DNA of 63,957 nt, counting the filler, from Reticulomyxa filosa (lineage: Eukaryota > Protista > Foraminifera), in assembly GCA_000512085.1 (NCBI GenBank). It is 15 parts of 15 records of this genome, joined end to end, with 100 filler letters (N's around TTAATTAATTAA, not from the genome) between each part and the next. Parts side by side here need not be neighbours in the genome. Positions count along the whole stretch, not along the records: positions 56,968 to 60,555 come from ASPP01025384.1; 14 more parts are not named here. One strand, written 5' to 3'. Shown piece after piece: positions 56,753 to 60,655 of the stretch. The translations under genes and the position numbers were made by a program. The notes beneath the pieces are model-generated. The model was not told the DNA's origin. It did not search any database and saw only the letters and a list, made by a program, of their open reading frames with translations. Position 1 is the first letter of the stretch. The number at the start of each line of letters is the position of its first letter.

Positions 56753-57444
56753 CAATGATTAATTTAAATTATTGTAAAATGAATTATATGTCTATAAATA
56801 GTTTACACAAAAGTATGCTTGTTTTTATTAAATATTTTGAAAATATGAAAAAAATTACGATCTTCATNNNNNNNNNNNNNNNNNNNNNNNNNNNNNNNNN
56901 NNNNNNNNNNNTTAATTAATTAANNNNNNNNNNNNNNNNNNNNNNNNNNNNNNNNNNNNNNNNNNNNTTTTAAATATCAAAATTTTGAAATATCAATTAA
57001 AAAAAGTAACAATAAAGAAAATTAGCAAAAAAAAAAATTTTAATATTTAAAAACAAGATTAATAGATATTTTTTAAAAAAAAAATTATGTTTAAATGTTT
57101 ATTTTTCATGGAAAAAATCGATTATCTTCGTATAGTGCCATTTAGGTATGTCAGTTTTTTTTGCAATCTATTGTATTGCCCATTCAGTTGTAATCTCTAA
57201 AGTTGTGATCATTTAAACTGGTACAACAGTACAATAACATATCGCTTAATGCCTTTTGCGAAAATTATATTTAAGCAAAATATTTAGCTAATGACAGTAA
57301 ACGCTTTTTAATTTTGTCTTTACAGTCCTTTCTTTTTCCGCAGAGGCAGTAAAAGATATATAACAAAAAAGTAATTTTATACAAACTAACAAATTAATTT
57401 CAAATTTAAATATTTAATTTTCTTCATATAAGACTATTTAGGAT

Positions 57445-57637
57445 TGCGGTTTCGCCCTACCGTTGGGCTCATCAGTGCTGTCAGGTTGCAGAAGGACCGG
57501 TCACAATATGCCGACCAACTACTAGCCGCTTATCGTTGTTCCTCTTATTCAGAGATCGCTAGCGGCCCTCATATACCAAGTCTCCTGATTCACAGAATAA
57601 AAAACAGTTGCTTGAAATATGAAAACAGCATACCGCA
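57445..57637 (-). ncRNA. Hammerhead ribozyme HH1, type III topology with a ~143-nt insert in loop I; predicted cleavage GUA between 57631 and 57630
   Basis: Minus strand: UGCGGU-A|UGCUGU-(insert)-ACAGCA-CUGAUGA-GCCC AACGGUA GGGC-GAA-ACCGCA. Helix I is 6 bp, helix II 4 bp, helix III 6 bp, all Watson-Crick. Confidence 0.85.
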
Positions 57638-59115
57638 GATTGACTATCCGCCGCTTAGAGTCTGTTTCCGCATTACTTAGATAAGAACTCCAAACCCTTA
57701 GCTATCCATAATTGTACTATGGTGCACGGGACTTAACCCATGGTACATACCTAATACAACTATGGACCACCCGGCCTTTACGCATGCATATGTATGCACC
57801 TGTCCAAAATTCGGCACAGGGTCCTGTCCGCACAACCAGATAGACCCCCCATAACCGGGATATTGGACAACCTCAAAGGTCTATGAATGTCCTGTAGAGC
57901 CCCCTCTACAGGCCCCATCCATAGTGCTTTGGGCCGTAAGTGTCGACGGCATAATCAATCTACTAGGGACCTATGTTTAATAGGCCCACTCTATCTCGAG
58001 AAGTAGAATGGTGGAGATTATACTCATGGGAGTTAATCTCCAATAAACTTGACCCCCTAGCCTTATGAGGTAGAATACCTCAAGGAATCCATTTTCCATG
58101 CTCGGGTTACAAGTTCTCCTATTTAAGCATAGGGCTTTATGTTTAATAGGCCCGTTCTACCATTTACATATAACGGATCAATCTAGCCCGCGCAGTAAGC
58201 AGTAGAAGGTGGAAATTATACTCATGGGAGTTAATCTCCAATAAACTTGCCCCCCTAGCCATTATGAGGTAGAACACCTCAAGGAAACCATTTCCCAGGC
58301 TAGTGTTACAAGTTCTCCCTATTTAAACATATCCCTTCCCGTATCCCAAAGTCTGCGAGGTCAACAATAGATCGTAAATTGACCATCCGCCGCTTAGAGT
58401 CTGTCTCCGCATTACTTAGATAAGAATCTCCAAACCCTTAGCTATCCATATTCTTCTATGGTGTCTGCTGACTTAACAGCAGCCATACCGATGTATGGGA
58501 CCACGACCATAGCCGATATATGGACCACCCGGCCTTTACGCATGCATATGTATGCACCTGTCCAAAATTCGGCACAGGGTCCTGTCCGCACAACCAGATA
58601 GACCCCCCATAACCGGGATATTGGACAACCCCAAAGGTCTATGGATGTCCTGTAGAGCCCCCTCTACAGGCCCCATCCATAGTGCTTTGGGCCGTAAGTG
58701 TCGACGGCATAATCAATTTACTAGGGACCTATGTTTAATAGGCCCACTCTACCTCGAAATAGAATGGTGGAGATTATACTCATGGGAGTTAATCTCCAAT
58801 AAACTTGACCCCCTAGCCTTATGAGGTAGAATACCTCAAGGAATCCATTTTCCATGCTCTGGTTACAAGTTCTCCTATTTAAGCATAGGGCTTTATGTTT
58901 AATATGCCCGTTCTACCATGTACATATAACGGATCAATCTAGCCCGCGCAGTAAGCAAAGTAGAAGGTGGAAATTATACTCATGGGAGTTAATCTCCAAT
59001 AAACTTACACCCCTAGCTGTTATGAGGTAGAACACCTCAAGGAAACCATTCCCCAGGCTAGTGTTACAAGTTCTCCATATTTAAACATATCCCATCTCGC
59101 TTTCTAAAGTCTACG
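57634..59115 (-). repeat. Two tandem structured units: A 57634-58357 and B 58373-59115
   Basis: Near-identical over most of their length (e.g. ATCCGCCGCTTAGAGTCTGT, TATGGACCACCCGGCCTTTACGCATGC). Several differences fall in loops or are compensatory. Confidence 0.93.
57972..59089. repeat. Four copies of a 160-195-nt multibranch module (57972-58131, 58138-58331, 58730-58887, 58894-59089)
   Basis: Each is bounded by inverted repeats TATGTTTAATA(G/T)G ... C(C/A)TATTTAA(G/A)CATA and contains GGA(G/A)ATTATACTCATGGGAGTTAATCTCC and TGAGGTAGAA(T/C)ACCTCA hairpins. Confidence 0.9.
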
Positions 59116-59117
59116 GG

Positions 59118-59179
59118 GGCAGCATACCTTACTTTAATTAGAAAGGTTTCGCCCCGCCATTGGGCTCATCAGTGCTGCC
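59118..59179 (-). ncRNA. Hammerhead ribozyme HH2, canonical type I; predicted cleavage GUA between 59125 and 59124
   Basis: Minus strand: GGCAGCA-CUGAUGA-GCCC AAUGGCG GGGC-GAA-ACCUU UCUAAUUAAAGU AAGGU-A|UGCUGCC. Helix I is 7 bp, helix II 4 bp, helix III 5 bp. Confidence 0.93.
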
Positions 59180-59323
59180 AGGCGTATTATAGCCTTTTTA
59201 AGACTTTTGATAGTTTATTTTACTCGTATTGTTATAGCTACTGAAGTTGCTCGCACCCTCCTGTCTCTGCAAAGCTCCCCAAAGGGTTTTGCTGAGTAGG
59301 TTGCGGACCGACTGGGCTTCAGT

Positions 59324-59367
59324 AGCGCATACGGTTTCGCCCTACCTTTGGGCTCATCAGTGCTCTC
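59324..59367 (-). ncRNA. Hammerhead ribozyme HH3, intact core; local fold is a minimal type I with vestigial helix III
   Basis: Minus strand: GAGAGCA-CUGAUGA-GCCC AAAGGUA GGGC-GAA-AC C GU-A|UGCGCU. Helix I has one mismatch. Confidence 0.7.
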
Positions 59368-60655
59368 AGGTCGAGATGTGCTTTCCACTAGCCATCCCCT
59401 ATGGGCTTCCTAGCGACAAAGTCTTCACTAGTCTCCATATACCTCTGGAGGTCCTAGTACGACTATGCTAGGCATAGGGTGCAATTAGTGGCATCTCTAT
59501 TGGGGAACGGTAACCTTCGGCTAGACAACCATGGGCAGAGTGTGGCCGCCTAGTCCATCTTCGACTAGGTTGACCTATCTCCACGTCTCAGGTGGAGTAT
59601 AGGAGCGTCCTATTCTACCAGTTGTAAAGCTATCGTCAGTTGGCAGCCTATCAGTGTCTCTTCGAACACGAGACTTATAGAAAGGCGTGCAGAGCTGTCC
59701 GGACAGTTACACTAGACCCAATCCCCTTAGACCTTCTGTGCGGCGCCCCCGTGAAGTATAAGGCAGCTCTACGATTACTTTCGGAAGGAGTAGAGCTTAT
59801 TAATAGTCCGGGCACCACAAGGCATGAATGCTCCCACCTCTCACGAGGTGGCTTGTGTCGGCGTACTTGGCCAATTCCCGTTGGTCTTTGCAAATGGGCC
59901 GGAACTATGTTACTATCACTCCCCCCGATCTTTTGTAGCTAAGTCCTAAGACATCGCTACGCTGATATCGGTTCGGTTCACCCACCCCGGGCAAACAGGA
60001 GTAACGTCCTCCCAGGAGTAATAAGGTTGTTTTCGCCATCCTACAGGCACCATAAGGTCCTTCTGTAGTAGGCTACTTACTAGCTGCAACGTTTATTACC
60101 CCCTTTATCAATGAAGAGGGCCAACTATTAATAAGATACTCGGTCCTTAGCAATTAGGAACGCGTACCTTATAACAGCACGAAGAGTCGCTGGTCCCTTA
60201 GGGAAGATCAGACCGTGAACCACCCCAATCCTATTTGTCCACCGCCGGTGAGCTGCAGAACAGCAAACACCGGAGGGCCCTACTTCTCCGTCTCTCGGGA
60301 CAAGCCCGCGGAGTGGAGTAGGGTAGGAGAGCAAGTGGTAATATTCGGTGTATTGTTATTGATAAGCCATGCTTTCAATAACAAGCGCGAATATTGATAT
60401 GATGTTTTTAGGCATCATATGTTCACCTACATACAACCCAGTATGCAGACTGAATACTTGATATGATCGCATATCCAGTTTTTACCTGAGCTTAAGGCGG
60501 GTATTGAGTTATCCTCAATACGGGCTTTCGCACTAACTTGCATTACTTGTCCCCCNNNNNNNNNNNNNNNNNNNNNNNNNNNNNNNNNNNNNNNNNNNNT
60601 TAATTAATTAANNNNNNNNNNNNNNNNNNNNNNNNNNNNNNNNNNNNNNNNNNNN

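Follow-up and report, generated by a model that had tools for sequence, protein, structure and literature searches.

The DNA examined here holds a real and unusual non-coding cassette of three hammerhead ribozymes, whose activity is predicted from this one locus, and which is best read, with a probability that we put at about 45%, as a self-processing non-coding transcript whose core-free 1494-nt segment would be circularized by a host RtcB-type ligase, a natural Tornado-like cassette. The window as a whole (63,957 nucleotides, filler included) joins 15 parts of the Reticulomyxa filosa assembly GCA_000512085.1; the analysis covers positions 56968-60555 only, the part from ASPP01025384.1, and a single locus. 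Every hammerhead core in this interval lies on the minus strand, and no core or ribozyme was found on its plus strand. The two-ribozyme layout of the initial annotation holds as regards HH1 and HH2, but a third intact core, at 59360, had been overlooked. In minus-strand order the three are HH3 (type III, discontinuous), HH2 (type I) and HH1 (type III), and the core motif CUGANGA, the GAAA and the NUH cleavage triplet are perfect in each (GUA in HH1 and HH2, GUC in HH3). The layout is III-I-III, with three ribozymes and four segments, and the substrate given to HH3 within it is a probable assignment. The predicted products are, in order, the end of an upstream RNA (A), a 1086-nt spacer that would keep both the HH3 and the HH2 cores (S), the 1494-nt core-free cargo (B), and a tail.

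The element is sharply bounded on one side, where an AT-rich flank (56968-57444, assigned to neither strand) begins directly past HH1 helix III; GC content, 45-49% in the element, falls there from approximately 47% to 22% in a step at 57444. Across 56968-60555 there is no ORF longer than 100 aa, Pfam match, telomeric array, reverse transcriptase (RT) ORF or poly(A) tail, the ORF search of the AT-rich flank being one of stop-free pieces only, and the region beyond the contig edge lying outside the piece. The cargo has no coding signal, linear or circular, and a protein-coding reading, including one that runs around the circle, is ruled out by a longest sense-strand stop-free run of 73 codons and by the lack of a Pfam match. 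As folded RNA, the minus strand of the cargo is the more stable of the two (-589 vs -474 kcal/mol).

Both of the ribozymes reported initially, a type I hammerhead cutting at 59125/59124 and a type III cutting at 57631/57630, have all their expected parts and are predicted to be active in MFE folds. HH2 (59118-59184, minus strand) has its core CUGAUGA at 59172-59166 and GAAA at 59150-59147, a 4-bp helix II, a closed helix III of 5 bp, and a 7-bp helix I (59179-59173 with 59124-59118); the last nucleotide of its GUA triplet is 59125. HH1 (57445-57637, minus strand) has its core at 57475-57469, a 7-bp helix I (57630-57624 with 57482-57476) closed by a structured loop I of 141 nt, a 4-bp helix II, a 6-bp helix III (57637-57632 with 57450-57445), and a GUA triplet that ends at 57631. 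A site fitting the arms of HH1 arose by chance in 2 of 5000 shuffles, and one fitting those of HH2 in 24 of 5000. Loop I of HH1 contains runs of four and six U, at 57625 and 57604, ahead of the HH1 core, which is evidence against transcription by Pol III.

When 59200-57430 is folded as one piece, the MFE structure has both HH2 and HH1 in their active forms, at a cost of 0 and 0.3 kcal/mol, respectively. Helix III of HH1 competes with the last helix of the cargo, and its probability drops to 0.02-0.17 in shorter contexts; since it can be out-competed to this degree (P 0.02), the active fold of HH1 depends on context. The arms of the two ribozymes differ, and each change is matched within the ribozyme's own site, and across all three ribozymes of the locus the arms covary with cognate sites in helix I (G-C/A-U and C-G/G-C) and in helix III (C-G/U-A). 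HH2 and HH1 also differ in a matched way in a predicted pseudoknot, in which loop II pairs with nucleotides immediately 5' of helix I (GCC with GGC for HH2, ACC with GGU for HH1); a pseudoknot of 3-4 bp could form in all three ribozymes, judging by sequence complementarity, and in approximately 40% of hammerheads a pseudoknot joining stems I and II is a known activating feature (PMC3088659). Similarity among the ribozymes is confined to their enzyme strands of 38-40 nt. The Rfam check proposed with the initial annotation did return hammerhead matches (E 0.056-0.57), but all fell below threshold, the best scoring 24 bits against gathering cutoffs of 48-56; the long inserts fall outside the Rfam models.

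The HH3 enzyme strand (59331-59371, minus strand) comprises, as a discontinuous type III hammerhead, a tertiary strand, helix I arm, core, helix II and helix III arm, and differs from HH1 at 3 places in 40 nt. Its probable substrate strand (60204-60216, minus strand), found by a mismatch-tolerant search, lies some 840 nt upstream of the core and carries a GUC triplet, with a predicted cut at 60211/60210. The pairing would consist of five Watson-Crick pairs in helix III, six of seven pairs in helix I, where there is one G.A mismatch, and 4 bp in helix II. Both of the arm differences from HH1 are compensated in this substrate, C-G becoming U-A at position 5 of helix III and G-C at position 5 of helix I. 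Sites of this type occurred in 17 of 5000 shuffles when helix III was restricted to Watson-Crick pairs, and in 111 of 5000 when G-U was allowed (p 0.003-0.02). Further, the anatomy of HH3 repeats that of HH1, in that the tertiary strand is directly preceded by a helix, and the last helix of the upstream RNA stops 4 nt before the predicted HH3 cut to leave a GGUC tail, the counterpart of a GGUA tail in B. What counts against the assignment is that the active fold, with its one helix I mismatch, costs 7-12 kcal/mol (ViennaRNA). On balance, HH3 probably does pair with 60216-60204; if that assignment is right, an insert of approximately 840 nt would divide HH3, making it a discontinuous hammerhead. 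Two other roles for HH3 were tried and rejected, namely a compact type I ribozyme cutting a GUC about 25 nt past the core, where a mismatch opens helix I and a 9-bp helix competes, and a trans-acting ligase of the circle joint, for which its helix III arm is mostly paired and the active fold is not adopted on that joint. A likeness between the sequence upstream of HH1 and that downstream of HH3 was equalled in 39% of shuffles, and was likewise set aside.

The 831-nt loop I insert of HH3 (59373-60203, minus strand) is structured, folding at -304 kcal/mol against -261 +/- 8 kcal/mol in 12 mononucleotide shuffles, and has no Rfam match and no ORF with a Pfam match. It makes up much of segment S (59125-60210, minus strand), the predicted structured product that retains the HH3 and HH2 cores. 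Segment A (60211-60555, minus strand) is the 3' part of an upstream structured RNA, at least 345 nt of which are present before the contig edge; the helix closing it, which ends 4 nt before the predicted HH3 cut, has a probability of about 0.5, and the 956-nt region has a folding z of -3.8. Beyond that edge, upstream of A, a further hammerhead of type I is predicted.

Segment B (57631-59124, minus strand) is a dimer, and the predicted cuts coincide with the borders of that dimer. As first claimed, the product between the cuts consists almost exactly of two tandem structured units: exactly 1494 nt separate the cuts, and the units, of approximately 750 nt each, are 91% identical. Unit 1 occupies 58370-59124 and unit 2 occupies 57631-58366 (both minus strand; folding z -7.1 for unit 2), with identity rising to approximately 97% in the middle 550 nt and dropping sharply in the leaders and one variable arm. 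A 134-nt module occurs twice per unit, alongside a second domain of approximately 340 nt, so B as a whole contains four near-identical modules on the minus strand, at 58956-59089 and 58755-58887 in unit 1, and at 58198-58331 and 57999-58131 in unit 2; a fifth copy was sought upstream, and rejected. Differences between the units preserve base pairs, with two double-sided changes, eight single-sided changes that mostly yield G-U, and no broken pair, as counted from two sequences on a structure derived from those same sequences. Within the variable arm both units retain the loop UUAAGU, although the 6-bp stem that carries it differs in sequence between them (58465-58482 in unit 1, and 57725-57742 in unit 2, both minus strand), the stem of unit 2 still pairing. 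Since the differences between units are thus structured and pair-preserving rather than random, B is not a collapsed repeat. We found no Rfam family and no tRNA match in the cargo, and discarded tRNA or tmRNA, group I and II introns and other Rfam families; for the module, twister, twister-sister, pistol, hatchet, hairpin and HDV-like ribozymes were discarded in a by-eye comparison, as the required motifs are absent or misordered. B is predicted, from its modelled fold, to be a pseudo-two-fold dumbbell, each half of which would hold two module copies and a domain of approximately 340 nt; a contact between loops, AUGG with CCAU, is also proposed for it.

How the ends of B would meet differs from what was first proposed. 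The 7-bp end helix put forward initially can be drawn from the sequence but does not survive in the modelled ensembles, where it has a probability of 0.00 in both linear and circular forms and costs 7.7-8.7 kcal/mol to force, because its 3' arm is taken up by the closing helix of the second domain of unit 2 (57963-57945 with 57652-57635, P 0.9-1.0), a helix supported by an A-U/G-C compensation in unit 1 (58718/58377). Pairing of each unit's start with its own end was also tried, and has a probability of 0. Instead, the leaders of the two units (59096-59117 in unit 1, and 58338-58359 in unit 2, both minus strand) are predicted to pair with each other as a central rod (59117-59112 with 58338-58343, and 59100-59096 with 58355-58359; P approximately 0.74). 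The cross duplex is worth -20.1 kcal/mol against -6.4 and -11.8 kcal/mol for the self pairs, but 8 of 128 allele swaps match the native leader duplex, so that covariation in the modelled rod is no more than suggestive. If the leaders do form this rod, then the dimer, and not the monomer, is the folded entity. The 5' and 3' ends of B may still pair over 3-4 bp, in another register (59120-59118 with 57632-57634, predicted P approximately 0.7). One loop of the dumbbell is then closed by the covalent joint between units, a linker of 14 nt, and the other by the two free termini of B, 5' and 3', which together amount to 11 nt; in this predicted fold the free ends occupy the place equivalent to the internal joint, and their ligation would complete the symmetry.

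The internal joint between unit 1 and unit 2 (58360-58376, minus strand) is a disabled homolog of a type III cut site followed by the HH2-side leader, and exceeds an exact ligation joint by 3 nt. Of its 14 positions, 5 depart from the HH1 site, the divergence elsewhere being 3-10% (P 4e-5 to 8e-3). Two of the five differences are variants found in the HH3 site, and another two disrupt pairs that do not vary among the three real sites. In our models the joint binds the cores 9-13 kcal/mol less well than do the cores' own sites, and hence the dimer should stay uncut. Its origin could lie in copying of a monomer circle followed by slippage of UGC repeats, or in a DNA crossover within the 9 nt common to both cut sites. 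It had also been proposed that released cores could re-cut the joint made by ligation, for which they now appear to be poor candidates, presumably because each released core keeps one of its arms occupied in cis; for full enzyme strands, binding to the circle joint is weaker by 1.6-2.4 kcal/mol than binding to their own site.

The idea that two hammerhead topologies leave both catalytic cores outside the cargo gains from these results, given that the arms covary, both ribozymes are predicted to fold into active forms, the internal site appears disabled, and the modelled ends meet. The upstream ribozyme cleaves on its own 3' side and the downstream one on its own 5' side, which is the orientation used in Tornado. 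We envisage that the minus strand would yield a long non-coding precursor that processes itself; that cuts by HH3 and HH2 would enclose S, and those by HH2 and HH1 would enclose B; and that HH3 would set the 3' end of the upstream product A likewise. After its cut, the last helix of B may retake 3 nt from HH1 helix III and so aid release. Hammerhead cleavage produces a 5'-OH and a 2',3'-cyclic phosphate, ends that RtcB joins (PMC7229834; bioRxiv 2023.07.11.548538), and RtcB circularizes up to 80% of retrozyme monomers in vitro (PMC7229834), as well as the RNA in the Tornado system; a host tRNA ligase of this type might close B into a stable circle without a ribozyme. Because B lacks a core, a copied circle could not rebuild the cassette, and B is thus more likely to be a product than a transposition intermediate. 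As to what such a product does, the occurrence of near-identical modules in four copies on a symmetric frame is suggestive of multivalent binding, and B may most plausibly be a protein-binding or assembly RNA of that kind. A broader proposal, which we regard as somewhat unlikely, is that the locus represents a natural array in which hammerheads of types III and I alternate, two being discontinuous, and divide one transcript into core-free cargoes and core-bearing spacers; the 1494-nt cargo would then belong to an undescribed class of large, self-similar structured RNA and function in covalently closed form, perhaps as a multivalent scaffold.

Alternative readings accept much of the same evidence. 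The same cuts could release B as a linear RNA, the ribozymes serving only to set homogeneous ends on structural RNAs within a polycistronic non-coding transcript, as happens to phage mRNAs with hammerhead clusters. Everything described above about the cuts fits this equally well, the end stem of B is weak (3-4 bp, where that of Tornado has 18 bp), closing the circle brings no gain in folding stability (-583.6 kcal/mol circular vs -589.1 kcal/mol linear), and phage hammerhead clusters are cut into linear pieces (PMC3088659); yet the ends of B lie where symmetry would put the counterpart of the covalent unit joint, and hammerhead-cut monomers in animals are mostly circular, and are ligated by RtcB in vitro (PMC7229834), so we consider a linear product unlikely. 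Similarly improbable, in our estimation, is a selfish non-autonomous retroelement of retrozyme or Penelope type, of which the precursor or S would be copied while B is a passenger or an RT-binding scaffold, its dimeric form arising from circle copying. The fall in GC from 47% to 22% past HH1 does resemble an insertion edge, such elements contain most of the hammerheads in eukaryote genomes (PMC7761336, PMC8557442), the junction of the units looks like a ligation joint, and S is structured and retains two cores. Against this, there are no LTRs or ribozyme-bearing repeats, similarity being limited to the 40-nt enzyme strands; the repeated unit is without a core; the piece has no poly(A) tail, telomeric repeat or RT ORF, and no plus-strand ribozyme; and the joint, 3 nt longer than exact ligation would leave, is explained equally by DNA crossover in the shared 9 nt of identity.

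A type III ribozyme followed by a type I around S is exactly the order that would leave a cyclic phosphate on A and a 5'-OH on B, and S could therefore be a self-excising intron in a form of hammerhead-driven splicing, a ligase joining A to B while HH1 forms the 3' end or closes a circle of A and B. Trans-ligation of ribozyme-cut ends by RtcB works in cells (PMC13685140), and A and B each end in a helix with a 4-nt GGUH tail. Nevertheless, there is no specific scaffold between A and B near the joint: folding the two as one molecule stabilizes them by just 9 kcal/mol, spread over scattered helices, whereas the ends of B are predicted to meet without A. Of the three ribozymes, HH3 is the one least well established, and A is incomplete at the contig edge; splicing seems to us decidedly improbable. 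Least probable of all, and by our reckoning only a slight chance, is a silent relic, contaminant, engineered construct or assembly artefact. The contig is short, neither relatives nor listed sequencing runs were found, the GC content is unlike that of the flank and HH3 has one mismatch, but three perfect cores with compensated arms and pseudoknots speak against this reading, as do the pair-preserving differences between the units, the direct joint to natural AT-rich DNA and the lack of a plasmid match (blastn); contamination from another organism would alter the host, and not the finding. The reading of B as a circularized, core-free product remains the one that we prefer.

By the features tested, the locus is not an LTR or non-LTR retrozyme, a Penelope-like element, a viroid-like replicon or a self-splicing intron. 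It resembles plant LTR retrozymes (PMC4918200) in being genomic and non-coding, with type III hammerheads and a predicted circular RNA on the scale of 1 kb, but differs in lacking LTRs of 300-400 bp, in using two topologies and in releasing a core-free RNA; a PBS, a PPT and a 4-bp target-site duplication are not evident in the part of the locus present, the 5' edge of which is beyond the contig end at 60555. With metazoan non-LTR retrozymes and the hammerheads of Penelope pLTRs (PMC7229834, bioRxiv 2026.07.22.740005, PMC8557442) it shares tandem units, a type I hammerhead and a product suited to RtcB. Those elements, however, have units of 150-400 nt rather than 750 nt, whereas here there is no ribozyme inside the units, the internal site is disabled and no RT ORF is present; a type I hammerhead in every tandem unit, the mark of a non-LTR retrozyme, is absent, as neither unit has a core, and the piece contains none of the features of Penelope-like elements or Terminons (RT ORF, pLTR, telomeric repeats by the hammerhead). 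Viroid-like replicons carry ribozymes within the monomer, usually in both polarities, unlike this locus with its core-free cargo and coreless plus strand. Nor were domains of group I or group II introns (the P7 core, domains V-VI), including circularly permuted group II introns, recovered among Rfam hits with E up to 10.

The nearest natural case is that of the hammerhead clusters of prophages (PMC3088659), which, unlike the present array, flank protein genes; spliced or circular products were proposed for those clusters, but neither was detected, circles having been sought (PMC3088659). Among 38 phage loci with several hammerheads, a small sample picked by one helix II sequence and scanned to 250 nt from each core, which is blind to long-range substrates, a type I followed by a type III occurred in none, and a type III followed by a type I in three. 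A generic core pattern retrieved 120 phage loci that share only the core with this locus. Division of a hammerhead into two parts separated by hundreds of nucleotides is known from mammalian Clec2 genes (PMC6765202), and is paralleled here by the 141 nt in HH1 and the approximately 840 nt in HH3, although the Clec2 hammerhead is a single ribozyme in an mRNA 3' UTR, where it removes the poly(A) signal, and not part of a three-ribozyme non-coding array.

Closer analogs come from engineering. As in Tornado (bioRxiv 2023.07.11.548538), two self-cleaving ribozymes that are discarded flank a cargo and would leave RtcB-type ends, which pairing holds close in Tornado and is predicted to hold here; the locus differs in being natural, in using hammerheads of types I and III rather than twisters, in having a third ribozyme upstream, and in that its ends would be held by the symmetric fold of the cargo and a predicted stem of 3-4 bp rather than by a designed stem of 18 bp. 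As with StitchR (PMC13685140), the type III and type I pair around S would give exons A and B the ends that RtcB joins; the locus, by contrast, is natural, non-coding and arranged in cis, and compatible ends are what speaks for A-B joining. The initial annotation knew of no described system with this layout in Rhizaria, and the literature that we searched, with incomplete coverage, agrees, containing neither this layout nor hammerheads in Rhizaria; a layout with the cutting cores outside the cargo was found there only in engineered constructs. Relatives of the enzyme strand and module were absent from viral contigs, metagenomes and bacterial genomes when searched with exact and relaxed patterns, and from plasmids and phages by blastn, the collections searched being viral, metagenome, bacterial, phage and plasmid, with eukaryote genomes outside them; four pattern matches to the enzyme strand or module were dismissed as chance, being without helix II.

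Genomic hammerheads are usually regarded as parts of selfish repeats, in which the released RNA still carries a ribozyme and is open to copying. At this locus the cores are left behind, and the released RNA therefore looks like a product, which is the logic engineered into Tornado and StitchR. If true, the cassette would provide a third natural route to large circular RNAs, beside back-splicing and retrozymes, and would add a large structured RNA of a new kind with four repeated modules. It would further imply that hammerheads with inserts of 140-840 nt escape searches designed for compact forms, in keeping with Rfam having scored all three of the present ribozymes below threshold.

The 1494-nt cargo between the two predicted cuts (57631-59124) holds two units of about 750 nt, each with two copies, a and b, of a 134-nt module (1a, 58956-59089; 1b, 58755-58887; 2a, 58198-58331; 2b, 57999-58131; all minus strand). 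The AUGG and CCAU loops of the module are unchanged in all four copies and are mutually complementary, and at the level of sequence a kissing contact between them is possible. Partner exchange is also possible between the strands flanking copies a and b; such a strand swap can provide a second level of symmetry. Where the cargo's 3' and 5' ends would be ligated, the sequence around the predicted circle joint (57636-57631 plus 59124-59119) could fold into a hairpin of 4 bp whose 4-nt loop contains the joint, and the same fold is possible around the middle joint, at the border of units 1 and 2 (58375-58364). The two hairpins differ by two G-C to A-U changes, which may reflect AT drift rather than selection.

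Among phage loci bearing several hammerheads, L028, L076 and L099 have a type III followed by a type I hammerhead. In L105, L002, L035 and other contigs, one strand carries between 5 and 11 hammerheads of type I within 5-8 kb. One phage type III hammerhead (L038:185-211) shares its helix II and loop II with HH3, the probable discontinuous type III hammerhead with its core at 59360, and has a complementary loop I sequence, but no further similarity; these features support the putative pseudoknot geometry. The predicted segment S (59125-60210), which holds the HH3 and HH2 cores, also contains a structured insert of 831 nt (59373-60203, minus), which had no match in Rfam and could be a separate functional RNA. 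The minus-strand linker between HH3 and HH2 (59190-59240) is A-rich and weakly folded, and has a 15-nt stretch in common with 60350-60364 (repeat family D11).

In the AT-rich flank adjoining HH1, two frames lack TGA over 158 codons (57083-57413, minus; one plus frame of 56968-57444), so that a coding exon with TAA and TAG read as sense is possible. The absence is within chance expectation at 22% GC, and stop-free pieces of the flank (56968-57444) had no match in Pfam. The contig's sense strand starts with five G (60551-60555, minus). They may have arisen by chance, be left over from a library adaptor or mark a genuine 5' end of the RNA, and they are predicted to pair with 57965-57970 in a joined fold.
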